A stretch of 64,000 nt of DNA from Octopus sinensis (taxonomy: Eukaryota), in assembly GCF_006345805.1 (NCBI RefSeq), contig NW_021833065.1, forward strand, positions 248,001-312,000, read 5' to 3'. Below the pieces are notes generated by a model. It was not told the DNA's origin. It worked only from the letters and a program-made list of their open reading frames with translations, and searched no databases. The first letter of the stretch is position 1. Each line of letters begins with the position of its first letter. This document shows positions 22,580-63,281 of the stretch, piece after piece. The position numbers and the translations under genes are program-made.

Positions 22580-22746
22580 GATATAGCAATAATACATGTA
22601 AATCATAACTGTACTTACAGGAGATCTTGTGTGATAGTTTATCCGTATTAGAAATCAATGAGAATATTAAAAGATGCACACAGCGAATGTAATCCAATTA
22701 TTTTACTTAAAATTTTGGATATCATAATTCTTTGAAGACATAAATA

Positions 22747-24218
22747 CACAACTGATGCTTCTTAGGCCCAACATTTCTCTCAAGGTACTAACACTCTGTC
22801 GAGTATGCACACTAACATTACACATCCATCGGAGCATACTGGCTTCATTCCTCGCGAGCTTACGCATGTCCTCAGCAGTCACGGCCCATGTTTCACTGCC
22901 ATGTAGCATGGCTGTTCGTACACATGCATCATACAGTCTGCCTTTTACTCTGAGCGAGAGGCCAGCAGAAGTAAGAGCTCCCTGAACTTTGCCCAGGCTA
23001 TTCTTACTCTAGCAGTTACACTTTCAGCGCACCCACCCCCACTACTGACTTGGTCACCTAGATAACGAAAGCTATCAACTACTTCTAGTTTTTCCCCCTG
23101 GAAAGTGACAGAAGTTGTTTTCTGCTGATTTTCAGAGTTTATTGCTCCTGAGCATCTGCCACATACAAAAACTATCTTCCCAGTTAGCCTTCCTTTGACA
23201 TTGCTGCACCCACCTCTTATGTGTCTATAGCTTACACTGGGTACATCTTATAGAGTTTCTACAGATCGAGCAGGGCCATCTTCCTGAAGACATTTGTGGT
23301 TTGTCTTCCTTCCTACTTATTAGTACTTTGGTTTTAGCTAGGTTGATTCTAAGGCCCCTCGATTCTAATCCCTCCTTCCACACCTGGAACTTCTCCTCCA
23401 GTTCTGATAGTGACTCAGCAATTAGAGCGAGGTCGTCAGCATAAAGGAGCTCCCAGGGGCAACCTGTCTTGAATTCCTCCGTAATTGCCTGGAGGACTAT
23501 GATAAATAGGAGGGGGCTGAGGACTGAACCCTGGTGGACCCCAACCTCTACTTTGAATTCTTCTGTGTACATGTTGCCAACCCTAACCTTACTTACCGCA
23601 TCCCTGTACATGGCTTGCACAGCTCTCACCAGCCATTCATCTATCCCTAGTTTCCTCATTGACCACCAGATGAGGGATCGGGGGACCCTGTCAAAGGCTT
23701 TCTCCATGTCAACGAAAGCCAGGTACAGGGGCTTATCTTTGGCTAGGTATTTCTCCTGCAGCTGTCTCACCAGAAATATGGCATCAGTGGTGCTTTTCCC
23801 TGGCATGAAACCAAACTGCATCTCGTCCAAGTTGACTCTCTCCCTAATCAGTTGGGCTATGACCCTCTCTGTAACCTTCATTACCTGATCCAACAGCTTG
23901 ATACCTCTGTAATTATTTGTATCCAGGGCATCACCTTTACCTTTGTAGCAGTTGACTATTATGCTGCTACACCAGTCATTGGGTATGACTCCTTCGTGTA
24001 TCACCTGGTTGACTATACGGGTGACTAGGTTATAGCCGACACTGCCAGATATTTTGAGCATCTCTGCAGTAATTCCTGATGGGCCTGGGGCTTTCTCTGT
24101 CTTCATGCTTCTAATTGCCTTAGCTACCAAGAACTATCAACTCTGATAGCTGGTCCCTCTGTTGGGTCAACATTCAGCAGACTCTCTTTATCCCATTCAT
24201 TTTCTTTATTCAACAACC

Positions 24219-24225
<7 letters not shown>
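22747..24225 (-). pseudogene. Internal RTE LINE fragment (reverse transcriptase pseudogene)
   Basis: ORF 23225-24130 has RT motifs (QFGF, DMEKAFDRVP, GVHQGSVLSPLLF, YADD). It corresponds to 25238-26738 of the neighbouring copy but carries a 15-nt and a 10-nt deletion, a 4-nt insertion and a 1-nt deletion. Both ends are missing. Confidence 0.92.

Positions 24226-24254
<29 letters not shown>
24223..24254. repeat. (TA)n microsatellite at the 5' break of the LINE fragment
   Basis: Visible dinucleotide run. Confidence 0.95.
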
Positions 24255-24262
<8 letters not shown>

Positions 24263-24267
24263 ATGTG

Positions 24268-24356
24268 AGTGCACCTATGTATGCTGTGAAGTATTCCAAT
24301 GCTGTGAAATATATTGAGTGATTAAGAACATGACTTCTGAAATTTATTCTCTCTTT
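24268..24356 (-). repeat. Right arm of the inverted repeat enclosing an RTE fragment
   Basis: agtgcacctatgtatgctgtgaa[gtattccaatgctgtgaa]atatattgagtgattaagaacatgacttctgaaatttattctctc pairs with 22470-22541. Confidence 0.85.
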
Positions 24357-24620
24357 TTTGGTCTTATATTCCTGATACTCAGTTAGAGCGCTAATTAGTT
24401 GTGCTGTATTAGGAGATAATTATCCTAGTTTTTCTTCATTATATATATCATCATCATCATCATCATCGTTTAACGTCCGCTTTCCATGCTAGCATGGGTT
24501 GGACGGTTCAACTGGGGTCTGGCAAGCCCGAAGGCTGCACCAGGCCAGTCAGATCTGGCAGTGTTTCTACAGCTGGATGCCCTTCCTAACGCCAACCACT
24601 CCGAGAGTGTAGTGGGTGAT

Positions 24621-24835
24621 TTTATGTGCCACCGACACAGGTGCCAGACGAGGCTGGCAGACGGCCACGCTCGGATGGTGTTTTTTATGTGCCACCGACA
24701 CAGGTGCCAGACGAGGCTGGCTGACGGCCACGCTCGGATGGTGTTTGTTACGTGCCCTCAGCACGGAGGCCAGTCGTTGCGGTACTGGCTACGGTCACGT
24801 TCGGATGGTTTTCTTATGTGCCACCGGCACTGGTA
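24621..24835. repeat. 63-bp tandem repeat in the LINE 3' UTR (2 near-identical units, 1 diverged unit, 1 partial)
   Basis: Units start at 24621, 24684, 24747 and 24813 with (t/g/c)tta(t/c)gtgcc. Confidence 0.9.
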
Positions 24836-25001
24836 CCACAAGGATACAAATTCCATTGATGTTCATCTATTTTGATTTGGTTCGATTTGATTCGATTCGA
24901 TTCTCACTTGCCTCAGCAGGTCTTCACAAGTGTCACAAGAAGGAAGGTATGCACAGGTGGACTGACTACGTCCCAGGTAGGGGCCACGGATTATGGCTTC
25001 A

Positions 25002-27287
25002 CTAGTCTTGCCGGGTCTTCTCACGCACAGCATACTTCCATAGGTCTCGGTCTCTAGTCATTTCCATGGTGAGACCTAACGTCCGAAGGTCGTGCTTCAC
25101 CACCTCGTCCCAGGTTTTCCTGGGTCTACCTCTTCCACGGGTTCCCTCAACTGCTAGGGATTGGCACTTTCTCACACACCTATCTTCATCCATTCTCGCC
25201 ACATGACCATACCAGCGCAATCGTCTCTCTTGCACACAACAACTGATGCTTCTTAGGTACAACATTTCTCTCAAGGTACTAACGCTCTGTCGAGTAAGTA
25301 CACTGACATTACACATCCATCGGAGCATACTGGCTTCATTCCTCACGAGCTTACACATGTCCTCAGCAGTCACGGCCCATGTTTCACTGCCATGTAGCAT
25401 AGCTGTTCGTACACATGCATCATACAGTCTGCCTTTTACTCTGAGCGAGAGGCCTTTAGTCACCAGCAGAGGCAAGAGCTCCCTAAACTTTGCCCAGGCT
25501 ATTCTTATTCTAGCAGTTACACTTTCAGCGCACCCACCCCCACTACTGACTTGGTCACCTAGATAGCGGAAGCTATCAACTACTTCTAGTTTTTCCCACC
25601 GGAAAGTGACGGAAGTTGTTTTCTGCAGATTTTCGGAGGTCAATGCTCCAGAGCATCTGCCACATACAAAAACTATCTTCCCAGTTAGCCTACCTTTGAC
25701 ATTGCTGCACCTCTTATGTGTCCATAGCTTACACTGGGTACATCTTATAGAGTTTCTACCTACACCTTTTCTACAGATCGAGCAGGGCCATCTTCCTGAG
25801 GATATTTGTGGATTTTCTACCTTTCTACTTATTAGTACTTTGGTTTTAGCTAGGTTGACTCTAAGGCCCCTCGATTCTAAACCCTCCTTCCACACCTGGA
25901 ACTTCTCCTCCAGTTCTGATAGTGACTCAGCGATTAGAGCGAGGTCGTCAGCATAGAGGAGCTCCCAGGGGCAACCTGTCTTGAATTCCTCCACAATTGC
26001 CTGGAGGACTATGATAAATAGGAGGGGGCTGAGTACTGAACCCTGGTGGACCCCAACCTCTACTTTGAATTCTTCTGTGTACATGTTGCCAACTCTAACC
26101 TTACTTACGGCATCTCTGTACATGGCTTGCACAGCCCTCACCAGCCATTCATCTATCCCTAGTTTCCTCATTGACCACCAGATGAGGGATCGGGGGACCC
26201 TATCAAAGGCTTTCTCCATGTCAACGAAAGCCAGGTACAGGGGCTTATCTTTGGCTAGGTATTTCTCCTGCAGCTGCCTTACCAGGAATATAGCATCAGT
26301 GGTGCTTTTCCCTGGGACAAACCCAAACTGCATCTCATCTAAACTAACTCTCTCTCTAATTAGTTGGGCTATGACCCTCTCCGTAACCTTCATTACCTGA
26401 TCCAACAGTTTGATACCTCTGTAATTATTTGTATCCAGGGCATCACCTTTACCTTTGTAGCAGTTGACTAGTATGCTGCTACACCAGTCATTGGGTATGA
26501 CTCCTTCGTGTATCACCTGGTTGACTATACGGGTGACTAGGTTATAGCCGACACTGCCAGATATTTTGAGCATCTCTGCAGTAATTCCTGATGGGCCTGG
26601 GGCTTTCTCTGTCTTCATGCTTCTAATTGCCTTAGCTACCACGGAACTATCAACTCTGATAGCTGGTCCCTCTGTTGGGTCAACATTCGGCAGACTCTCT
26701 TTATCCCATTCATTTTCTTTATTCAGTAGCCTTTCATAGTGGCATCTCCAAACCTCTCTCTTTGCCTCCTCATTTAGCGCAAGTGAACCATCATCCATGC
26801 GAACACACTTCTCTCCTACCACATCACGATTCTCTCTCACACACTGTCTTGCAACACGAAATACCTCAAGTCTTTCATCCTCACGGCTCAGAACATTGGC
26901 AAATTTTTTCTTATCCGCTTCCCCTCTGGCTAAATAAACCTGTCTCCTAGCTTCCCTTTTGGCTGTCTGATACAATTCCCTGCTACCACCGTTCTTCCAG
27001 TCCTTCCAAGCCTGTCTCTTTTGTCTAATAGCCCTGTCAACCACAGTGTTCCACCACCATGTTACTCTGGGTCGAGATGGTACTTTGCTCCATCCACAGA
27101 TCTGGTCAGTGGCTGTCAGCAGATTGTCCCGTAGGAATCTCCAGTTGTCTTCCACATTAAGTGAAGCTATATCCCCTTCTATTTCGTCAGAGGCTTCGAG
27201 TAGTATGTCTCTAAATCTCTGTCCATTTGCAGGATCTTTAAGCTTCCAGACCCTTCTCCTCCAAGCTGGTCTTCTTCTGGGCAACCA
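25002..27287 (-). CDS. RTE ORF, linker plus reverse transcriptase with an embedded C4HC3 finger; endonuclease missing
   Basis: No stop across about 760 codons (ORF track). Motifs: PGPSGI, NYRGIKL, QFGFVPGKSTTDAI, FVDMEKAFDRVP, GVHQGSVLSP, LLYADD, FRYLG, HGSETW, GRGRPRKTW. The ORF-track N-terminus (27288-27389) is spurious read-through of (TA)n and flank. Confidence 0.93.
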   Translation of the reverse strand, partial: WLPRRRPAWRRRVWKLKDPANGQRFRDILLEASDEIEGDIASLNVEDNWRFLRDNLLTATDQICGWSKVPSRPRVTWWWNTVVDRAIRQKRQAWKDWKNGGSRELYQTAKREARRQVYLARGEADKKKFANVLSREDERLEVFRVARQCVRENRDVVGEKCVRMDDGSLALNEEAKREVWRCHYERLLNKENEWDKESLPNVDPTEGPAIRVDSSVVAKAIRSMKTEKAPGPSGITAEMLKISGSVGYNLVTRIVNQVIHEGVIPNDWCSSILVNCYKGKGDALDTNNYRGIKLLDQVMKVTERVIAQLIRERVSLDEMQFGFVPGKSTTDAIFLVRQLQEKYLAKDKPLYLAFVDMEKAFDRVPRSLIWWSMRKLGIDEWLVRAVQAMYRDAVSKVRVGNMYTEEFKVEVGVHQGSVLSPLLFIIVLQAIVEEFKTGCPWELLYADDLALIAESLSELEEKFQVWKEGLESRGLRVNLAKTKVLISRKVENPQISSGRWPCSICRKGVGRNSIRCTQCKLWTHKRCSNVKGRLTGKIVFVCGRCSGALTSENLQKTTSVTFRWEKLEVVDSFRYLGDQVSSGGGCAESVTARIRIAWAKFRELLPLLVTKGLSLRVKGRLYDACVRTAMLHGSETWAVTAEDMCKLVRNEASMLRWMCNVSVLTRQSVSTLREMLYLRSISCCVQERRLRWYGHVARMDEDRCVRKCQSLAVEGTRGRGRPRKTWDEVVKHDLRTLGLTMEMTRDRDLWKYAVREKTRQD

Positions 27288-27419
27288 TATATATATATAT
27301 ATATATATATATTTTATTTTATTAGTGCATGTGCATTTATATGTAAGGAAGATATTCTTGCTCAGTAATTTTATTAACATTTTACACAATTTGTAATTAT
27401 TCTCTATGTTGCTTTTAAC

Positions 27420-32417: not shown

Positions 32418-32524
32418 GTGAATCTGGTTTGGGAAAATCTACATTGATAAATTCTCTATTTCTAACGGATTTATATTCTTCTGAGTATCCTGGACCATCA
32501 CTAAGAATTCAAAAGACTGTCAAG
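32418..32524 (+). CDS. SEPT7: Septin-7 coding exon (G1/P-loop)
   Basis: tttcag|GT GAA TCT GGT completes the phase-1 Gly and reads [35 protein letters not shown]. 107 nt; donor AAG|gttgac, phase 0. Confidence 0.95.
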
Positions 32525-47045: not shown

Positions 47046-47146
47046 GTTGACACAACTCAAGTACTCCTTAAAGAAAATGGTGTTTCATTGCGTTTAACTG
47101 TTGTTGACACACCAGGTTTTGGAGATGCCGTTGACAACAGCAATTG
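47046..47146 (+). CDS. SEPT7: Septin-7 coding exon (G3, DTPG)
   Basis: ttttttttttctttacag|[33 protein letters not shown]+TG|gtatga; 101 nt. Confidence 0.96.
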
Positions 47147-48205: not shown

Positions 48206-48340
48206 TTGGCAGCCTGTAATTGATTTCATTGACACTAAATATGAGGAATATCTCAACTCAGAATCCAGGGTTAACCGAACCATTATGCCTGACAACAGAG
48301 TCCATTGTTGCTTATATTTCATTGCTCCCACAGGTCATGG
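48206..48340 (+). CDS. SEPT7: Septin-7 coding exon
   Basis: poly-T...caaaag|T TGG... gives (C)[44 protein letters not shown]+GG|gtgagt; 135 nt. Confidence 0.96.
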
Positions 48341-48456: not shown

Positions 48457-48574
48457 ACTGAAACCACTTGATGTTGAATTCATGAAACGTCTTCATGATA
48501 AAGTAAATATTATTCCACTCGTTGCCAAAGCTGACACACTGACACCAGATGAATGCAGAGATTTCAAGAAAACT
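48457..48574 (+). CDS. SEPT7: Septin-7 coding exon (G4, AKAD)
   Basis: ccttcag|A CTG... gives (G)[39 protein letters not shown]|gtaagt; 118 nt. Confidence 0.96.
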
Positions 48575-51189: not shown

Positions 51190-51285
51190 ATTTTAAATGA
51201 AATAGCGCAGCATAAAATCAAAATCTATGAGTTTCCTGAATGTGATGATGAAGAGGAAAACAAACTGCAGAAGAAATTACTAAAG
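51190..51285 (+). CDS. SEPT7: Septin-7 coding exon (polyacidic/alpha5' region)
   Basis: tttattcag|[32 protein letters not shown]|gtttgt; 96 nt, phase 0-0. Confidence 0.95.
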
Positions 51286-52873
51286 GTTTGTTTATTCTAC
51301 ACCTTGTTTCTTTGTTAATAATTGTTTTCTTTGTTTAGATGTTTGTGGTGATTTATTTTGCTCCCCACCTCCATGTCATAAAAGTACTTATTTGAATATG
51401 AGAGTATTTTTTACATATAGTTTATAAAGTTGTTCATATATTTTATTGAAAAAAATCTACCAAAGTTATGTTTTGCAGGTTTTGTATTGCAGGTGGAATT
51501 TTGGGGACTATTTCAAAATTCTGCCACCCTACATACTTCAATATTTTTATATTTAGCTTTATTTTGGTTATTTATTCTTTTAATTATCTAAAACCAATTG
51601 CATATCAAATTGCCTAGGATTGTCTAATATGGTACTACTTTTATCCTCATTTTAATTTATATGAGTGAATTATAAAGTTTATTAATTCCAGAGTCATACT
51701 TATGTTGAAACTGAAACAGCTACATTTTTGCAGAGCTATATTCACTTTCACATTCTTTCATACCACAGTCTGTTTTGAAGTCTCAACACTGCACTTCTCT
51801 GGCCTGCTTCCTGATACAATTGTGCACTGAAATTGTAACAGTGACCAAGTCATAGAAGGGTAACAGAAATTGTTGACATTTCAGAATAAACTGTAGTTTG
51901 AAAAAAGAAATGTAAAATGTTTAAATATAGATTTTTGCATTCATAATAAGCTACGACTCTTCCACAATGTACTTGCTAATATTTACTAAGATACTTCAAA
52001 ATATTTAGTGATGAAACTGGGGGAAATTTATCCAAGTCATTAATTTAACAAAATTATGTCCCTCTTTTAAAACTTTGCCTGAAGTAGCATTCATGAATGC
52101 TTAGTATTTTGTGGCAAATATTTAGCAACCAAACTTTTTTTTTCCCCCTTCATTAGCTTAATTGATTTAATGGGTTTTTAATATATGCTACTCTAGTATA
52201 TTACTTCAAATTTTGCCAACTTTTAAATTATCATCCTGCTTTGCTATTTGTACTAATAACATTAATATAATAGCTTTCTGCCTTATAACTTTCTGCCTTC
52301 CAATAACTCATTTGCTGTTATTGAAATGATGTTGGTGTATTATTAAACATTTTTACACTAACACTGCTAAAAACCACCATTAGTGTTGACTTTTTTTAAA
52401 TATTGTTTTACTATATTTTCAGTTATCTTAGATTCATTTAAATTTAGTTTAAGTTTGTTGTGGTTTTTTTTTTTGTTTTTTTTTTGTTTGTTTTTTTTTT
52501 TTGTTTTTTTTTTTGGATTTTCTTTTACCTTTTCCTTTTGAATGATCAAACTGATTGTCTTCACGCCATATTTCTATAACTTTTATTTTAAGCACACTTT
52601 ATATACTCTTAGCCATTCGGAAGCTTTTATTCAGGACCTTGTGGCTATAGTTTAAAATTGATATATTAAGTTCAAGCCTAACCACAGAATATGTATTGCC
52701 AAAAGGCAATTTGAAAAAATCTCACTTATAGAAATAGTGTCAAAAGTAAGACTGTCCATAATTTTTGTTTCTAACTGCTCTACCATTAATTTATTTTAAA
52801 CATATAGGTCTATAATTAAATTTCAAGTTAGGTAGTTGCAAGACTGAGTTATTGAACTAGTTCTTTATATTTG

Positions 52874-53252
52874 ACTAGCAGTATCGCCCGGCGTTGCTCA
52901 GGTTTGTAAGGGAAATAACTATAAAGCATTTTTAGAGAGTTATAACCAAAAAATAGCAAAAAAATGGGAAAAAATGATGGTAAATTTTTTTTTGAGAGTT
53001 AAAAAGGATGGAGTTGCGTCCCCTAGACAGTTTGTGGTTCGTGTTTCTGATTCTCGACCCCATGTCGAATTTATCGATTTTTTTCAGAACTGGGGAAACT
53101 TTTCAAAATTTTGGCTGCGTTAGTTTTGAATTATGACATTGGGCTATGTGTGTGTCAAGTTTCATCAGAATCGGTTGAAAGCCGTGGTCAGGGTGAGGGT
53201 ACAAGCAAACAGAAACACGCACAGACAAACTGCCGTTTATATATAGAGAGAT
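52874..53252 (+). mobile_element. Non-autonomous Helitron/Helentron-like element (DINE-1/HINE style)
   Basis: Begins actagcagtatcgcccggcgttgctc, contains aagtttcatcagaatcggttgaaagccg, and ends acagacaaactgccgtttatatatagagat. CpG-rich relative to its flanks. Class assigned by remembered resemblance. Confidence 0.5.
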
Positions 53253-53954
53253 TAGTATTCTAGTCCACCTACTATTAATAATTAGATAAATAGAAGTTGG
53301 GTAAGAAAATGTAGCAATGTTTGGAAACATTGATGCTTTTGAATTTCATCTGTATCAGTTCATATCTCTGTATAATAGGGAAATTGTCATTCTTTTTTCT
53401 TTAGTTTTTAGAAGAAAACTCTAACAACTTTTATTAATGTACAATGATTGTAGATGATTAAAGAAATCTTACTATTTAGCTTGATTTTTTATTGAGGTTC
53501 TCATACTAATTGTATTGTAAAATCTTACTTTTGTGCGATACTTGGGTTTCATCTCTATTTATTATTATGACAGAAAAGTTGCATTTCACTGTTATTTAAC
53601 AAACATTTGTCTTCATTTCTTAATATACATTTTGTTTTCATATACTATTCTTGATGAAGTACAGAAATTGTATTATTTATCGATTCAGGAACAGTTTCAT
53701 TTTAATATCATTTAATTATTTAAATCGGTGTGCATGCATATGTGTACAAGTATACATAGACATACACATATACGCAGTAATTCCATTCAACAATATCTAT
53801 ATGCTTAAAAACTTATAGAAGTTGAAAAATCTCCCAAATATTAAGTTGGTTTTCACATTTCTAAAAGTATCTTATCTCATACCTATCTGGGAAGTGGAGA
53901 ATTAGCTGTCTGCTAAGTTGGATCTTGCACACTATTTTATTTTCAACCTTTCAG

Positions 53955-53984
53955 AAAGACTTAAAAGGCGGTAAATTCTTCAAG
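53955..53984 (+). CDS. SEPT7: Candidate 30-nt in-frame alternative microexon of septin-7 (KDLKGGKFFK)
   Basis: ttttattttcaacctttcag|AAAGACTTAAAAGGCGGTAAATTCTTCAAG|gtatgt. Phase 0-0 matches the host intron, there is no stop, and about 35 nt upstream are AG-free. No transcript evidence is available. Confidence 0.65.
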
Positions 53985-55948
53985 GTATGTAATTAAATTA
54001 TTTTCTGCTTTCTGTTTATTATTTTTTTTTTCATGTCTTATAGTGTCTCCATTTGCCTGTTGTTCTTTACCCAAACTCTTCTTTTTCCCTTTATGTCTGT
54101 ATCTAATATAGTATCGCAACGTATGTGTTTTAGTTGTTGCTATTGCAATAGCATTAGGCGTGCTTTAGTTTCTAAATGCAACTTTTATGTTCACTGGCAC
54201 ATTTTATCTCAGTGTTCGTGATAATATATAAATCTAATAATCTAATGTGATTTGGTATGTTAGTCACTCACTATTTGTATGTTTATACAAGGTTATTAAA
54301 AAGTGGTTTATGTTGAAGTCCACTTTCACAGCTCACTCACATCTGAAATTGAGTGTTATTTGACACTGAATGTAAAATAATCATTTCAACTCTCTTTTTT
54401 TTTTATATATATATATTTAATCTGAGCTGCCTATATATGTTAGAAAATACAGCTAATTTTGGGATGTTATACACATTTGAAATCATTCCTGCTGCACTCA
54501 TTTGTATTATAAAAACTAGTTCCTGCTTCATTCATTAGAATTATTTAAAAGTATTTAGTTTTAGTTATTAAATTTTATATTAATTTCTCATAATATCGCT
54601 AACTTGAGCAATACGAGATATTGACTACTGGTTTTAAATAAATCAGATTATTTAGAATTTTGTTCAGAAGAAAGTTTAAAGTAGTTTTTAAAGCTGGTTT
54701 GGATATAATTGAGCATTTTCTGTTAGCCAATTGCATTCTTTTATTCTAAACAAAAAAAATACCTTTCTTCAATTACATTGTAAATGTCTTCTCAATATTT
54801 TCATAAATGTAAGCAGTAATACTTGGAAGAGATAGTTTTCCACTATAAAACTGAAAATAAAATGCTGAACAACAATTTTATTGGTGTTCAGTTTTAAATT
54901 ACATTAGATTATATATTAAAAGGTTGATTACGAAACAATATTGAACTATTGGAGCTAATTTATTCTGAAAAGCAACATCCCCAGGATAAGTCATGTTTTA
55001 GTTATATTTTTGGCATTATTGGTTATTTTTTATAGTTTAGGAGAGATTAAATATTTTGTATTAAAAGATACATAATACAAAAAGTAATATATTTACTTTG
55101 CTATACTAGGCATATCTTTTGATATTTAATTACACTTATAGACTACAATTTTCTGCTCTACCAACTGAGATACAATTCAATTAAATAGCAAACGAAACAA
55201 CCATAATTATTTTTCTCATGTTCTACTCAGTTCTGCATTAGAGTATTTAGGAACTTTAATCTGTGAGTGGAAGATGACGTGCAAGTTCACTTTGTTTTTG
55301 AAACCATTTAAGTAAAAATAAAATGAGGGTTGTCATAAAGTGCTATTTCGAGATATTCTACTTATTTGTAGTGATAGATATTAGCCTAGCTGAATTAGCA
55401 AGTTAATGAAATAGAAACCATAATGGTCGAAATACTAGATTTTATTTGATATTATCTAGTTATGAAATTTAAACTCTTACTACCAATATGAATTCTGTAA
55501 CTTCTGAAATAGAATGTGCTGAATATTCTTATAAAGTATGACCTGAGCATAAATGCCATATGCTTTCTAAAATAAATACCATATGTTTAAATGACAGTAT
55601 ATACTAACTGGATAAATAATGCAGAAAATACTTTTACTGACATTATTGCTCTAATTCTCTAGTTAAGTGTATGAGGGCTAATACTAAAGCACTTCCAGTT
55701 ATGTTATAGTATTTCATTTGGTGCCTTATTCTTCTGATTTCCAGAGCCAACTTTGCTCGTCTCTTTTAGGTCAATAAAATAACAAGAATATACTGAGTTT
55801 ATCTAATCATCTTTCCTGTGTAAATATTGTGATTAATCATTATTTTTCTCAGTCTTAAATAGATCACTAAGTTTATCATAATAATAAATGTATTTGAATT
55901 CAAAGTAACTTTATATTGATAGAGATATCGCAATGAAAAATGTTAATA

Positions 55949-56210
55949 GGCATAGGTGTGGCTGTGTAGTAAGAAGCTTGCTTTCCAACGACATGGTTCT
56001 GGGTTCAGTCCCACTGCGTGGCACCTTGGGCAAGTGTCTTCTAATATAGCCCCGAGCCAACCAAATCCTTGTGAGTGGATTTGGTAGATGGAAACTGAAA
56101 GAAGCCTGTCTTAAATATGTATAAAGTACTGAGGTTAATTCATTCAACTAAAAATTCAAAGGCGGTGCCCCAGCAAGGCCAAGTCTAATGTCTGAAACAA
56201 ATAAAAATAA
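55949..56210 (+). mobile_element. tRNA-derived SINE (OK-like), internally deleted
   Basis: Head ggcataggtgtggctgtgtagtaag, B box gggttcagtccc, tail ggcggtgccccagcaagg...ctgaaacaaataaaa. Confidence 0.85.
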
Positions 56211-56300
56211 AAAATATATTTAAATTCTATGTTATGGTGCAGGGAAAATTGTGCAGATAAGTTATATAACTGAATCTTATTCTTAGTGTTTTATTATTAT

Positions 56301-56682
56301 AGGTACAGGTGTGGCTGTGTGGTAAGAAGCTTGCTTCCAAACCACATGGTTCCAGTTTCAGTCCCACTGCATGGCACCTTGGGGCAAGTGTCTTCTGCTA
56401 TAGCCTCAGGCTGACCAAAGCCTTGTGAGTGGATTTGGTAGACAGAAACTGAAAGAAGCCCATATGTATGTGTGTACGTTTGTGTGTCTGTGTTTGTCCC
56501 CCCACCATTGCTTGACAGCTGATGTTGGTGTGTTTACATCCCCGTAACTTAGCAGTTCAGCAAAAGAGGCCAATAGAATAAGTACTAGGCTTGCAAAGAA
56601 TAAGTCCTGGAGTTGATTTCTTCAACTGAAGATGATGCTCCAGCATGGCTGCAGTCAAATGACTGAAACAAGTAAAAGAGTA
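56301..56682 (+). mobile_element. Full-length tRNA-derived SINE (OK-like)
   Basis: Head aggtacaggtgtggctgtgtggtaag, core, and tail gctccagcatggctgcagtcaaatgactgaaacaagtaaaagagta. Confidence 0.88.
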
Positions 56683-58272
56683 TTATGCCACTTTCATATT
56701 CTGGATTCCTTTTTTTTTTATTACAGTAAATACTAGGAATATTCATCGCTGTGATGAAAATCATTATCCTGTTACCAAATTATCATAACTAGCTTTAACT
56801 TGCTTTCTTTATTCTTCGTTCATTAGTTCCCACCTGTTGGGAATAGGTATCAGAACTTTTGGCAAATTTACTTGCTATAGATTGGCATCTTATCCTATTG
56901 GAGACTTGTCTCTCATCTGCTGAGCAGTCAAATACTGAAACTATGGACTTTTTGAAGTTTACAAAATAATTGTCAGCCAAGAGAAATATGTTAAACTAAT
57001 TAATTAATTTAGAGCAATGAATCAGTGTTGGTTGGTGGTATGCAACTTACCCCATATATATATATATATATATATATATTGTTTATTAACATTTTTAATA
57101 CTAAAAACTAGTTCTTGGTTAAACTCAGAAATATAAAACATTGCTTTTAAATCAACCAGTATGAAAAATGCTGGTTTTATTTTATTAATAATAGTTTTTT
57201 GAAGCTTATTTTTCCTAATCCAAAGCTGCATTGAATTATTAGAAATTATAATTTTAGTTAATTATAAATTAATACTTAACATTCAATATAGGTTCAAAGT
57301 TTGCTTATGTTCTTGTTTTATTGTTGTTTGTCATTTTCTGAGATTCTTTTCAGGACCTTTTATTCAAATCTGCATGTTTTGCTTAATTGTGCTTATTTAC
57401 TTACTTATTTATTATATCTATTTATTTATTTAATTTCTTTTTCTTTTTTCTTTTTTACTATTCTTATAATTTGGCACCATTTGTGCTTTTTTTCCCCCTG
57501 GCACCATTTGTGCTTTTTATTCCCCTCTGCAAATATATTTCCTTATTTTATAATTGAGGTATATCAAAATTAAGCAAACTGAATGTTTGAATTAAATTTG
57601 ATCTTGCTACCACAGTTTATCTTTACTATTATTCTTGATTGGTGGGTGGGGAGCTTTTTTTATTTAAAGAAAACAAACAATTTATAACTTCAACACATTG
57701 TACTTAGTGTTAATTATGTATATCAAAATATTTTTACTGTATTTTTTGCTGATATTTTGAAGTTTCAGATGTTACCTTGTCTCTACTGAGCTATTACTTC
57801 AAGTTTTTATGGTTAATTAACAATTTTGTTTGCATTATCTAAGTTGTTTTCAACCTTTGTCGTGTAACTGCTGTATACAAGAGGATTTATTTTCCTATCT
57901 TATCTGAAATATTTGTTAACATTAATATAATTAACAGTTGTTATTTCACTAAGTAACTTCTATGAATGGTTTTGAGGTTCTGAAAAATGTTTGATTCCAT
58001 TTAAATACCCTATCCTATCTTTACTAAAAGAAGTAAATGTAAAATATTATTACATGTAAATCTTTACTGCAACAAAGTCAAAATACATATCTAAAAAAAC
58101 TATGAATAGGATATTTCAACATGTTAAAGCAAAAGATGATTTAATGCCATTCTTTTCCAGATGACTGAACTCTTGATTCTTGACCAACAATTTTTCTCAT
58201 CCTATGTTTTTATTTGTAAATCATTCTCTTCATGCCTTTGGCATTTATATATGTTTAATTATTACAATTATG

Positions 58273-58273
<1 letters not shown>

Positions 58274-58315
<42 letters not shown>

Positions 58316-58533
58316 GATATTAGGGAATAAATCCAAACTTACAGGGGAAAATGAGATTTAGGATTAAATCCAATTTTATAGTATAAATATATTATATTAT
58401 ATTAAATTAGAGATAAAACCACTATTAGGCAAATCAAACAGTGAAAAACATAAGCCAATACATAAACCAATACATATGTTTTTCACTGTTTGATTTGCCT
58501 AATAGTGGTTTTATCTCTAATTTAATATAATAT

Positions 58534-58582
<49 letters not shown>
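58274..58582. repeat. (TA)n-flanked element with a perfect 60-bp inverted repeat
   Basis: (TA)n at about 58274-58313 and 58531-58582. Arms 58393-58452 and 58475-58534 are exact reverse complements around a 22-nt loop. Confidence 0.92.
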
Positions 58583-58586
<4 letters not shown>

Positions 58587-60289
58587 CAAAAAAATGAAGT
58601 GCATATAATTGGGAATTATGTCAACTCATTCATTCAACATGTGACAATAGTGAGTTTGTAAGGTGTCCTGACTATGTCTTTAATTAGTTTGTGTATTCAC
58701 AGTCCTCATTAACTGTGGTAGGTTTGAAAGACACAATTTATAACTTTGCATTTCAATGGTTGCTTTCAACTGTTTGTTGTAGTTTTGAACATAAATTTTA
58801 GATAGAGAGTTATATTGCGTGATGTATCAATAACTCTTGATAACTCTTCATCTTGTCAGTGAATGTGATATATACTTTCAGTTTCCTACAAAATTCAAGA
58901 TTTTCTAAGATTGTGATTTTATAGATTGTTAACCACTACAGATTTCACAGTATTTGCTTCGGAAATCAAAATGTAAAGTAGATGTAATTATTGAAAAGTC
59001 TTTTATCTGTAGAGATGACATTAATGGTCCAAAATGTTTTTAATCTTATTATTAACTCATTTTAGACAATTAGATATGGTGATTTTGTTTTTTTCTCCCC
59101 AACTCCCTTTTTATAGAGTTGTTGGTTATAAGATTTGAAAAAGTGTTTTATGATTAAAATGTCTGTGTTTAACATTTAGCATCTGTTCATGCCATTAGGA
59201 TTCAATTCATGAAGATAAATGATGACCAGTAACTTTCATAGCTTCAACTGTATAAACACATTGATTTCAGGTACATAATATATAGACACATTGATTTCAG
59301 ATACATAATATATAGACTGGTTGCAGCTAGAATATCCAGGGTCACCACTTTTCTATTTTGCTTTAATAAATAACCATCTCTTAATTAAAAGGAAGCCTAA
59401 GTTTTGAAATGATTTACCTTTTCAAGTATTTGTTCATTCAGTATGACGTCAGAGCCCTAATTTTCATAAAATTGCTTTCCATACTATATGTATTTTCTTT
59501 TCCTATGGATGTAGATGTATGAGGGTCAAGCAAGGAGACCTTGGAAGTATGGATAGTCTATTAAATTCTTTAGTTACTTGAATGATCAACATATATAAAA
59601 TGGTTTTAACTCTGTAAAGTAGAAACACATTTTCACACATTTTAATAGCTCAACTCTGTTTTGGGTTTTTTGTTGTTGATTTTTTTTTACATGGACATGT
59701 ATGTATTTTTAAATCATTTAACATTTCCCAATAATTTTATCATGGCAGTTTTTTCTGGTAAATCATAAACTAAATTAAACCTTAAATATTGATCTGGGAT
59801 TTTTTTTAAATCATCCCTTTCTGTAATTGAAGCATATTCTCTTTTTTCTCTCATCATACAACTGACTGGAAAGAAAAGCAAAAGAAAAAATTGTAATTTT
59901 TGTCTAAAATAATAACTTTTGTGTTAAACTTTATCAATTTTGAAAAATTGGTATTGTATGTTGATTAGACCTTAAGAGTGAACTTCATAGAACAATCAAT
60001 CTCTGAAGTTAGATTTTTAACAAACTGGTCATTTCTACCCTGCTCTTAGCATCCCTGTAGCCTCTCCAAATAATGCAACCCCTCCCAATCCTTCTCACTT
60101 CTCCTACACTCTTGAAAACCCTACCCACTACCACTCTTTTTACATGAGTTGCCACCTAGACACCTCATCACCACTATTTCTTTCTTTGGAGATACCACCA
60201 GTTCATTCTCACTGTCTCTCCTAAATGTGAGTAGTCATGTAACAAAACCTGCTCTACCCCAACCTCTTCCCTCGTACCTTAAACTCCAT

Positions 60290-60545
60290 CTAACGTAAGG
60301 ATGTAGCACACATACCCCCTCCTTAGGTTTGTAGAGTTTTGAGCTACACAGCGACCTCAAATACTGCTGGTAACATGAAGAAAATCTCCCAGTACCCACT
60401 GTAAAGAGGTTGACTTTGGGAAGGGCATCCAGCTGTAGAAACCATCCCAAAGCAGACACTGGAGCACAATGTAGTCCTTTGACTCATTGGATCCTCATGA
60501 AACTGTCCAGTTCATGCCAACATAGAACAAGGACATTAAATGATG
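60290..60545 (+). mobile_element. SINE/LINE 3' part with RTE-type tail
   Basis: gggaagggcatccagctgtagaaacc...catgccaacatagaacaaggacattaaatgatg. Confidence 0.65.
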
Positions 60546-60834
60546 GTATTATAAATATAAAGCTGTTGTAAAAGGATTCACAAACTAGTTGTTCTGATTA
60601 GAAACAATGAATTTGCTTTCAATTTTCATTATATAATTACATTTAATTTTTTTTCTTAATGAATTTTTTTATTTCTTTATATCAATTAACCATTGCAGAA
60701 TTGCTTTTGAAATTATTTTTCTCCTTTATCTTCCACCACCTCTCTCATGTTCAACAAGATAATGCTCAAGTTGTTGTTAATGAAGAGGGATGGTAGCTTT
60801 TCTAATAGTGTGTAATATTCAGAACAAGAAGTTT

Positions 60835-61562
60835 TCTTGTGAACGTGATCTGGGCATTACTGTCAGCAGCAATTTGCACTGGACAAAGCACATCTCTAAA
60901 ATTGTCAAGAAAGCTGAGGATGTCTTGGCATTATTCAGCAAGACCTTTGTCAGCCATTCTCTGGCTGTTTATTTAAGGCTGTATATGGCTATGGTGTGGT
61001 CACACTTGGAATTTGCATCAGCAATCTGGAACATCTATCTTGTTCAGGACAATGACCTTCTGGAAACTGTTCAGAGACATGCAATCAGGCATCTGCCATA
61101 TTCTGAACACCTTGCTTCCCTTAGTATAGATGCATTGAAGCTCCAACATCTGGCAACTGACTTAGTAAACACCCACAAAATTATTAACCATTGCACCAAC
61201 AACCAACTTTTTGAGCTCCATGTGACTCACACACATGGGCACGCCTACAAAGTCAGAAAACAGCACAGCTCCCATGACTTTCAGAAACATTTTTTCACAC
61301 TCAGAGTTGCTGAAGCATGGAACAAACTACTGGCATCAGTTGTTAGTTGCTGAGACATTGCTTCCCTTAAAACCTCCATGCTTCCTGAAATTTGCCAGCA
61401 CTACACCTGATATCCCCACCTCCATATGCATGCACACATGTATATCATGACACATACACTGTTCACTTTCCTGATTTTTATACATAATTGTATGTACTGT
61501 ACATGTACTTTTGATGAGTTGTGCACCTGAGCACTATACACAATAATTTTATTATCATTATT
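60835..61562 (+). pseudogene. CR1/L2-group LINE 3' fragment (RT C-terminus plus 3' UTR)
   Basis: ORF 60790-61353 reads ERDLGI...SHLEFASAIWN...LETVQRHA...HGHAYKV...KHFFTLRVAEAWNKL, the typical CR1-type C-terminus. An AT-rich tail lies near 61550. Confidence 0.85.
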
Positions 61563-62104
61563 ATTTATTATTCTAAAGAGACTAAAATGGGCAGGAACAG
61601 TGTGGGTTTTGAGATATTATGAAAGAAAATGTCTTGCTAATTTTTAAAATATTTTTATTAAGATACATGAATTACTACTGGAGCTACCTTAATAAAATCA
61701 ACATATATATATATATAATGGTGTTGAAATATATATATATATGTGTGTGTGTATATATATAAATATATATATCCACCTCCACTCTCATCTCTAACCATCC
61801 ACTTTCCCCTGATCCTATATTATCTGTATTCCCCTTTATACCCGCCTTCTTGTATTTTGAGAGTATACTCCGGTACCCTGTTGCTACCATCTTTATCTTA
61901 CTTCCAGTTACTCTCGTCCACCTTTATATAATATGGGGTTGCTGTGTATCTCCTATAGCAAGATATCTGTGCCTGTCCCTCTTTCATACTTTAACCTTCA
62001 ACACCTGGATAAAGTCACCTCCCCATCTCTCAAACACATTCCCATTCAGTTGAGGGAACTTTTTCTTTCCATTTTTTTTTCCTTATCTTACAAACTTGGC
62101 AATC

Positions 62105-62300
62105 TCACTAGTGCCAGTGTCACAAAAAAGGCAGCCAGTATCCACTGTAAAGTGGTTGGCAATAGGAAGGGCATCTAACTGTAGAAACCATGGCAAAGCC
62201 AACAGTGGAACCCAACAGAGCCCTGCACCTCATCAGATCTTGTCAACCTGTCCAACCCATACCTACATGTAAAGTGGACAGTCAATGATGATGATGATGA
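62105..62300 (+). mobile_element. RTE-type 3' tail (SINE/LINE end)
   Basis: ggttggcaataggaagggcatctaactgtagaaac...tgtccaacccatacc...gtggacagtcaa(tga)n. Confidence 0.7.
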
Positions 62301-62590
62301 TATATATATATAATATGATATCACACACACACACATATGAGTGATTAGTATCAAAATTGTAAATGCCATCTTTTATTATGAAATTCACAAGGAGTTTACA
62401 ACTTTTTTTTGTAACTATATATTATGTAACTGACATTATAACGACTAAGGTAGCGCCCATGGTAAATAACCTCACATAGGTATCTATACCATTTCTCCCC
62501 GCGTAATTTCAAATAATTAATACATTTTCCAGTGAGTAAATTAAACATTTCTTTTTCCTATTTGTAAAAGTATAACATTTTATGTTTTAG

Positions 62591-62687
62591 GACCGAGTTC
62601 CTTTCGCTGTTGTTGGCAGTAACACTGTGATTGACTGCAATGGAAAGAGAATGCGTGGACGTCAATATCCATGGGGGATTGTTGAAG
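62591..62687 (+). CDS. SEPT7: Septin-7 coding exon (septin unique element)
   Basis: tgttttag|[32 protein letters not shown]+G|gttaga; 97 nt. RGRQYPWG is the septin unique element signature. Confidence 0.96.
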
Positions 62688-63229: not shown

Positions 63230-63281
63230 TTGAAAATCTTGAGCATAATGACTTTATTGCTCTTCGAAATATGCTGATTCG
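63230..63281 (+). CDS. SEPT7: Septin-7 coding exon (end of SUE); gene continues beyond the window
   Basis: tttacttccag|TT gives (V)ENLEHNDFIALRNMLI+CG|gtaaga; 52 nt. Confidence 0.95.

Follow-up and report, generated by a model that had tools for sequence, protein, structure and literature searches.

Two questions are raised by a stretch of 30 nt within an 11-kb intron of Octopus sinensis: whether it is spliced into the transcripts of the surrounding septin gene, and what its ten codons would then add to the protein. The stretch was picked out in a preliminary description made from the nucleotide sequence of the window, i.e., the whole analyzed region of 64,000 nt, which proposed a hidden, frame-preserving microexon extending SEPT7 by a basic and aromatic peptide, possibly in neurons. 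The detection proved to be correct, which validates this kind of scan, as a real exon of 30 nt was found in an intron of 11 kb from raw sequence. The exon is neither hidden nor without parallels, and its interpretation is partly supported.

The host gene is encoded on the forward strand of the window by the exons listed in Table 1. Its translation contains the septin motifs G1 (GESGLGKS), G3 (DTPG) and G4 (AKAD) as well as the C-terminal block of the G domain (RGRQYPWG...VENLEHNDF). The best matches among protein structures are the SEPT7 chains 7m6j_C and 6n0b_C (about 1e-69), and the identity to human septin-7 amounts to about 77%. On these sequence grounds the gene was assigned to the septin-7 (SEPT7/Pnut/Cdc3) group. 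It spans 166 kb in O. sinensis and 153 kb in Sepia pharaonis. Its models begin with at least six alternative N-termini (MNRGSAPPPP..., MADKEQQY..., MDISST..., MDTLSR..., MFHT... and MERERT...) and end with three alternative C-termini (...TKDTKKDKKKSIF, ...TKDAAWSTFFRLKR and ...TKDGFRNLCVLPC), the 3′ exons being located past the end of the window. The septin-7 gene is therefore heavily alternatively spliced beyond the microexon.

The large introns of the gene comprise further features. Positions 22700–27400 of the window are GC-rich (0.40–0.47, compared to about 0.31 elsewhere) and consist of two nearly identical copies, spaced by about 2.5 kb, with long matching open strings (22728–23885 and 25207–26397). 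This block probably represents a repeat or transposon which has been duplicated. Within the host intron of the microexon, an open frame of 189 amino acids (60784–61350, forward strand) lies in a locally GC-richer region and may represent part of a mobile element.

The peptide KDLKGGKFFK is the stop-free translation of the 30 nt in phase 0-0. A spliced model of the window including these codons is 100% identical over 306 amino acids to the O. sinensis septin-7 isoform X6 (XP_029656070.1). Since the peptide is encoded just once in the window, the exon annotated in this isoform is the one described here. Among the O. sinensis isoforms, X1, X2, X3 and X5–X11 (XP_029656066/67/69-73 and XP_036355308-10) include the peptide, and X4 (XP_029656068) skips it. 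The same exon is found at the same junction in the annotated septin-7 isoforms of three further species. In O. vulgaris, it is included in CAI9715008/11/12 and skipped in CAI9715009/10/13. For O. bimaculoides, the first release has the exon, with the peptide KDLKSGKFFK, in X1, X2 and X4–X8 (XP_014776063/64/66-70), while the skipping form is represented by X3 (XP_014776065) and by the original gene model A0A0L8H234. In the cuttlefish Acanthosepion (Sepia) pharaonis, CAE1319371.1 carries the peptide NDLKGSKPLQ and CAE1319369.1 lacks it. The gene models of octopus were predicted automatically, with the naming in O. vulgaris partly derived from O. sinensis, and their RNA support is thus indirect. 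The exon, which the preliminary description took to be hidden, is accordingly already contained in RefSeq and ENA models of all four species, and its existence is known from public gene models. In the literature searched, no paper was found which discusses a septin-7 microexon of cephalopods.

The sequence features named in the preliminary description were all found in place. Upstream of the exon, gctaag (53912–53917) is followed by ttggatct, by TGC and by acactattttattttcaacctttcag/AAAGACTTAAAAGGCGGTAAATTCTTCAAG/gtatgt, in which slashes denote splice sites. The borders are canonical (cag/AAAGACTTAAAAGGCGGTAAATTCTTCAAG/gtatgt, with AAG/gtatgt as donor), and the previous AG upstream of the acceptor occupies positions 53916–53917, which leaves an AG-free zone of 35 nt before the acceptor. 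The size of ten codons and the phase 0-0 of the exon, as well as the phase 0 of the septin-7 intron, were confirmed by the translation and by the phases of the flanking exons. Splice sites were scored with a rough position weight matrix (PWM) from general consensus frequencies, without training on cephalopods, so that all scores are approximate. With values of 8.0 for the 3′ and 9.2 for the 5′ splice site, the microexon equals or exceeds most of the real exons of the septin-7 gene in the window. The constitutive sites bordering the host intron are weaker, with 4.8 for the donor AAG/gtttgt (51283–51291) and 1.8 for the acceptor ...tatgttttag (62570–62590).

Table 1. Features of the septin-7 gene and of the microexon in the window (PWM, splice-site score; slashes mark splice sites).
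Feature	Position	Strand	Properties and evidence
Septin-7 exons upstream	11756?-11939, 32418-32524, 47046-47146, 48206-48340, 48457-48574	+	
Upstream constitutive septin-7 exon	51190-51285	+	phase 0; ends ...KLQKKLLK; CTAAAG/gtttgt, weak donor
Host intron	51286-62590	+	11,305 nt, phase 0; between the two septin-7 exons
Conserved island centred on the microexon	53820-54183	+	77% identity over 388 nt to Argonauta
Branch-point-like ugcuaag	53911-53917	+	includes a second UGC (53911-53913); same in three octopod sequences; presumed branch site
UGC motif	53926-53928	+	27-29 nt 5′ of the acceptor AG; kept in Argonauta and the O. bimaculoides-like contig; no enrichment over intron background
Pyrimidine tract and acceptor cactattttattttcaacctttcag	53930-53954	+	PWM 8.0; 2 differences to Argonauta, 0 to the O. 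bimaculoides-like contig
Alternative cassette microexon of septin-7	53955-53984	+	30 nt; translation, annotated isoforms in three Octopus species, cross-species identity
Internal GT, GCG/gtaaat	53971-53976	+	PWM 6.6; would yield a frameshifting 16-nt exon
Donor AAG/gtatgt	53985-53990	+	PWM 9.2; unchanged in Argonauta and the O. bimaculoides-like contig
Downstream septin-7 exon	62591-62687	+	phase 0; ttttag/GACCGA; begins DRVPF
Septin-7 exon	63230-63281	+	

Long AT-rich introns are rich in AG/GT pairs and automatic models can spread errors among related species, so that a pseudo-exon arising by chance, or an annotation artefact which is never spliced in, had to be considered. However, splice pairs of this quality, in-frame, stop-free and not longer than 60 nt, are expected only 0.005 times per dinucleotide-shuffled copy of the host intron, and in the real intron the microexon is the sole one. 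In the whole window, three such pairs occur on the forward strand, two of which use one common donor within a repeat at 24.9 kb; the reverse strand has none. Furthermore, the orthologous 30 nt, AATGACTTGAAAGGC[G/A]GTAAA[T/C]CTTTGCAG, were recovered from seven RNA-seq runs of cuttlefish, in independent transcript contigs assembled de novo which place them exactly between the two flanking-exon sequences. One of these runs (SRR20545812) is a whole-larva sample of S. esculenta (PMC10466719). Together with the strong nucleotide conservation across genera described below, this leaves practically no room for an artefact.

In the same cuttlefish protein cluster, about 88 contigs skip the exon, with products of 605 and 440 amino acids, against 7 which include it, a crude count of assemblies from bulk samples which does not measure the inclusion level. 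Both forms therefore coexist, and inclusion is the minor one in those bulk samples. The proposed alternative exon, which preserves the frame and adds ten residues, is thus borne out by transcripts with exact junctions in cuttlefish as well as by including and skipping models in all four species.

The preliminary description had called for an alignment of the flanks across cephalopods and molluscs, and conservation of the exon and its splice sites in related species is present. In the genomic locus of Argonauta hians (L008), the microexon is identical in 30 of 30 nt, compared to 89 of 96 and 86 of 97 in the neighbouring exons. Unspliced O. bimaculoides-like genomic contigs (L001–L003) keep both splice sites and match in 29 of 30 nt, the single difference being the change from GGC to AGC (Gly to Ser) which is also seen in the O. 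bimaculoides protein models. The Sepia transcripts are identical to the octopus microexon in 24 of 30 nt. In two further ENA contigs (L004 and L005) with a KKLR-type upstream exon (exon E), a DRVP match of four amino acids, which would have been the next exon after an intron of 1.66 kb, was rejected as wrong, and neither the next exon nor a DLKG-like frame was found within 10 kb. These loci carry no information on non-cephalopods.

The conservation extends into the intron. Only two intron islands can be aligned between Octopus and Argonauta, and one of them, of about 360 nt, is centred on the microexon. The identity to the O. bimaculoides-like contig is 0.94–0.98 over positions 53800–54250, compared to about 0.85 for the whole intron, and peaks at the microexon. 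Apart from a poly-T indel near 54035, where it drops to 0.84–0.86, it equals or exceeds that of the upstream coding exon. Conserved among octopods are ugcuaag and the UGC at −29 as well as the pyrimidine tract and, past the donor, about 30 nt. Hence the exon and its flanking intron are conserved beyond the intron background, as would be expected of a cassette microexon, and strong conservation of flanks is typical of regulated alternative exons.

On the protein level, the insert reads KDLK[GS]GKFFK in the octopods examined and NDLKG[GS]K[SP]LQ in cuttlefish. Shared between both groups are the length of 30 nt and the core xDLKG[GS]K, whereas the tail FFK is present only in the octopods examined and is replaced by SLQ or PLQ in cuttlefish. 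The reality of the exon, its conservation and its alternative use can be regarded as virtually certain. As an overall explanation, a genuine alternative 30-nt cassette exon of septin-7, already annotated and conserved in length, position and core since before the divergence of octopus and cuttlefish, is held with high confidence to be the best one. The conservation of the exon throughout coleoids under an unusually strong nucleotide constraint has apparently not been described before. The same applies to its site directly behind the polyacidic/alpha5′ element, which is involved in the NC interface of septins, and to the unrelated alternative inserts at this position in other phyla.

When the exon is included, ten residues separate ...KLQKKLLK from DRVPF where helix alpha5′ ends on its C-terminal side. 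The polyacidic stretch ECDDEEE comes before this helix, and a strand follows the insert. In the alignment to the human SEPT7 structures (7m6j, 6n0b and 2qag), the insert corresponds to the gap between ...EEENKLVKKI and KDRLPLAVVGS, which agrees with the location at the end of the polyacidic/alpha5′ region given in the preliminary description. AlphaFold2 models of isoform X6, calculated with 58 and then with 130 aligned sequences, have a mean pLDDT of 52–54, with values below 50 for the insert. In both of these low-confidence models, to which little weight can be given, the helix stops at the residue encoded last by the upstream exon (K279), followed by the insert as a coil. Due to the low pLDDT, the geometry of the loop is not established by the models.

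The emphasis on a basic and aromatic peptide did not hold for cuttlefish. The octopus insert has four lysines and one aspartate in ten residues and a net charge of about +3, whereas the cuttlefish insert has two lysines and one aspartate, a net charge of about +1 and no aromatic residue. A conserved basic cluster like that of the septin PB1/PB2 patches was not found, as only xDLKG[GS]K is common to octopods and cuttlefish. Because the FFK tail and the charge differ, a function through basic or aromatic side chains would not be common to the lineages which keep the exon, and the idea of membrane binding through these residues is weakened on comparison of the sequences.

Instead, the insert may form a ten-residue surface loop with the conserved DLKGxK beside the polyacidic region that faces the NC (SEPT6–SEPT7) interface. 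Such a loop could alter the local charge or geometry near the polyacidic element. The altered element might in turn change filament pairing or the NC contact, the handling of the neighbouring polybasic regions or their availability to membranes, or the binding of partners, and inclusion would be regulated via the highly conserved flanking intron sequence. This mechanism is put forward tentatively. Should the exon alter the assembly of filaments or their association with membranes in a tissue-dependent way, it would offer a compact entry point to the regulation of septins in cephalopod cells.

The position of the insert is occupied in other animals as well. The preliminary description knew of no counterpart in vertebrate SEPT7, but the teleost septin 7b models X2 and X3 of Megalobrama bear an alternative insert of 14 amino acids, EEPCVSNALVSKAK, which ends in lysine and lies at the same protein position without sequence similarity. 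In echinoderms (Apostichopus, Patiria, Amphiura and Strongylocentrotus), septin-7 has an insert RRNGPK...NSLK of 16–25 amino acids at this position. Isoforms with and without it are annotated, and the inserts of 16–17 amino acids end in lysine. Like the cephalopod insert, those of echinoderms and teleosts directly precede [DE]R[VL]P[FL]AVV. However, they differ from the cephalopod exon in length and have no sequence similarity to it, so that homology is not demonstrable. No insert at this position was found in representative septin-7 proteins of gastropods, bivalves, annelids, arthropods and mammals, with one protein per cluster, a sampling from which minor isoforms could escape. Among sea-star models without the long insert, Asterias and Acanthaster (P0187 and P0223) differ by one residue, KKLPM/ERVPF compared to KKLPMR/ERVPF, which may be a 3-nt shift of the splice site or a plain species difference. 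The microexons reported for human SEPT7 are located in the 5′-UTR or in the second exon and change the N-terminus (PMC9929638). They are, like the cephalopod exon, very short alternative exons in the same gene family, but lie outside the alpha5′ region.

The most far-reaching reading would be a microexon common to coleoids whose tissue-restricted, possibly neuronal and eMIC-dependent, DLKGxK loop tunes the NC interface or the engagement with membranes, in an intron which gained alternative exons independently in echinoderms and teleosts. This is speculative and considered rather unlikely. If true, the intron position would be a recurrent regulatory site of septin-7 filaments.

It was also weighed whether the real exon is near-neutral, i.e., a tolerated change of loop length without a specific role. 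This would fit a surface position at which other lineages have unrelated inserts of 14–25 residues and a peptide of which half differs between octopods and cuttlefish. Near-neutrality is nevertheless improbable, as the length is fixed at 30 nt and the core DLKG.K is kept across coleoids, the identity of 30 of 30 nt between Octopus and Argonauta exceeds that of the neighbouring constitutive exons, the flanks are conserved and both isoforms are kept in all species examined. The exon might also serve as a switch to unproductive splicing through its internal donor GCG/gtaaat, which would yield a frameshifting form of 16 nt. This site, pointed out in the preliminary description, does exist, with a score of 6.6 compared to 9.2 for the main donor, and its GT is kept in all species. 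However, the GT lies within the conserved G-G/S-K codons, so that its conservation is explained by coding, and the site is not used in any of the protein models or transcripts examined. A role as such a switch is therefore very improbable.

For the regulation of the exon, the preliminary description invoked the neural SRRM4/eMIC programme. On the corresponding reading of a Srrm234/eMIC microexon, inclusion would occur mainly in neurons through the upstream UGC. The programme dates back to the ancestor of bilaterians. A UGC near the 3′ splice site and CUAAY branch sites are described for its targets, together with long AG-exclusion zones and with UCUC-rich tracts and branch points shifted upstream (PMC8797185; bioRxiv 10.1101/2024.09.17.613571). 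The microexon resembles the neural microexons of vertebrates and flies which depend on SRRM3/4 or Srrm234 in being short and frame-preserving, with conserved flanks, a strong 5′ splice site and a UGC between branch site and AG, as well as in adding residues to a probable surface loop of a protein associated with the cytoskeleton or with membranes. Three octopods share the strong 5′ splice site and the UGC located between AG and branch-like site, and the minority of including contigs in the cuttlefish bulk assemblies (7 compared to about 88) is compatible with a tissue-restricted use. However, the UGC is at chance level, since a TGC is found within 50 nt upstream of 46% of the AGs in the host intron and at least two for 8%. 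The AG-free zone of 35 nt is ordinary as well, as 17% of the AG-to-AG gaps in this intron have at least 37 nt. In addition, the pyrimidine tract ctattttattttcaacctttcag abuts the AG downstream of the UGC and is not located upstream of it as in the eMIC architecture. The order of a UCUC-rich element, UGC and AG with a long AG-exclusion zone was thus not found at the microexon. Moreover, most of the annotated octopus isoforms include the exon, unlike a rare neuron-only form. The octopus exon differs from the SRRM3/4 and Srrm234 microexons in the tract adjoining the AG and in a UGC which is not above background. Control by SRRM4/eMIC is not supported by this analysis beyond the resemblance, and a neural microexon of this type seems a possible but doubtful interpretation.

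The RNA of positions 53860–54120 folds no more stably than shuffled sequences (z = +0.71), so that an RNA duplex of the editing type is unsupported as reason for the conserved flanks. In its minimum-energy fold, the branch-site region (53897–53918) pairs with positions 53957–53982 of the microexon in a stem of about 22 bp, and the changes of Argonauta in the upstream arm of this stem are without compensation in the exon.

Finally, the second intron island which can be aligned to Argonauta is located at positions 52205–52416 of the window. Its identity to Argonauta amounts to 74% (L008:55598–55790), and it forms a peak of 0.94–0.96 in the identity to the O. bimaculoides-like contig. No frame on the forward strand is open throughout this island. 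It contains the branch-site-like sequence ACTAACACTGCTAA and may act in splicing regulation or as another kind of non-coding element.
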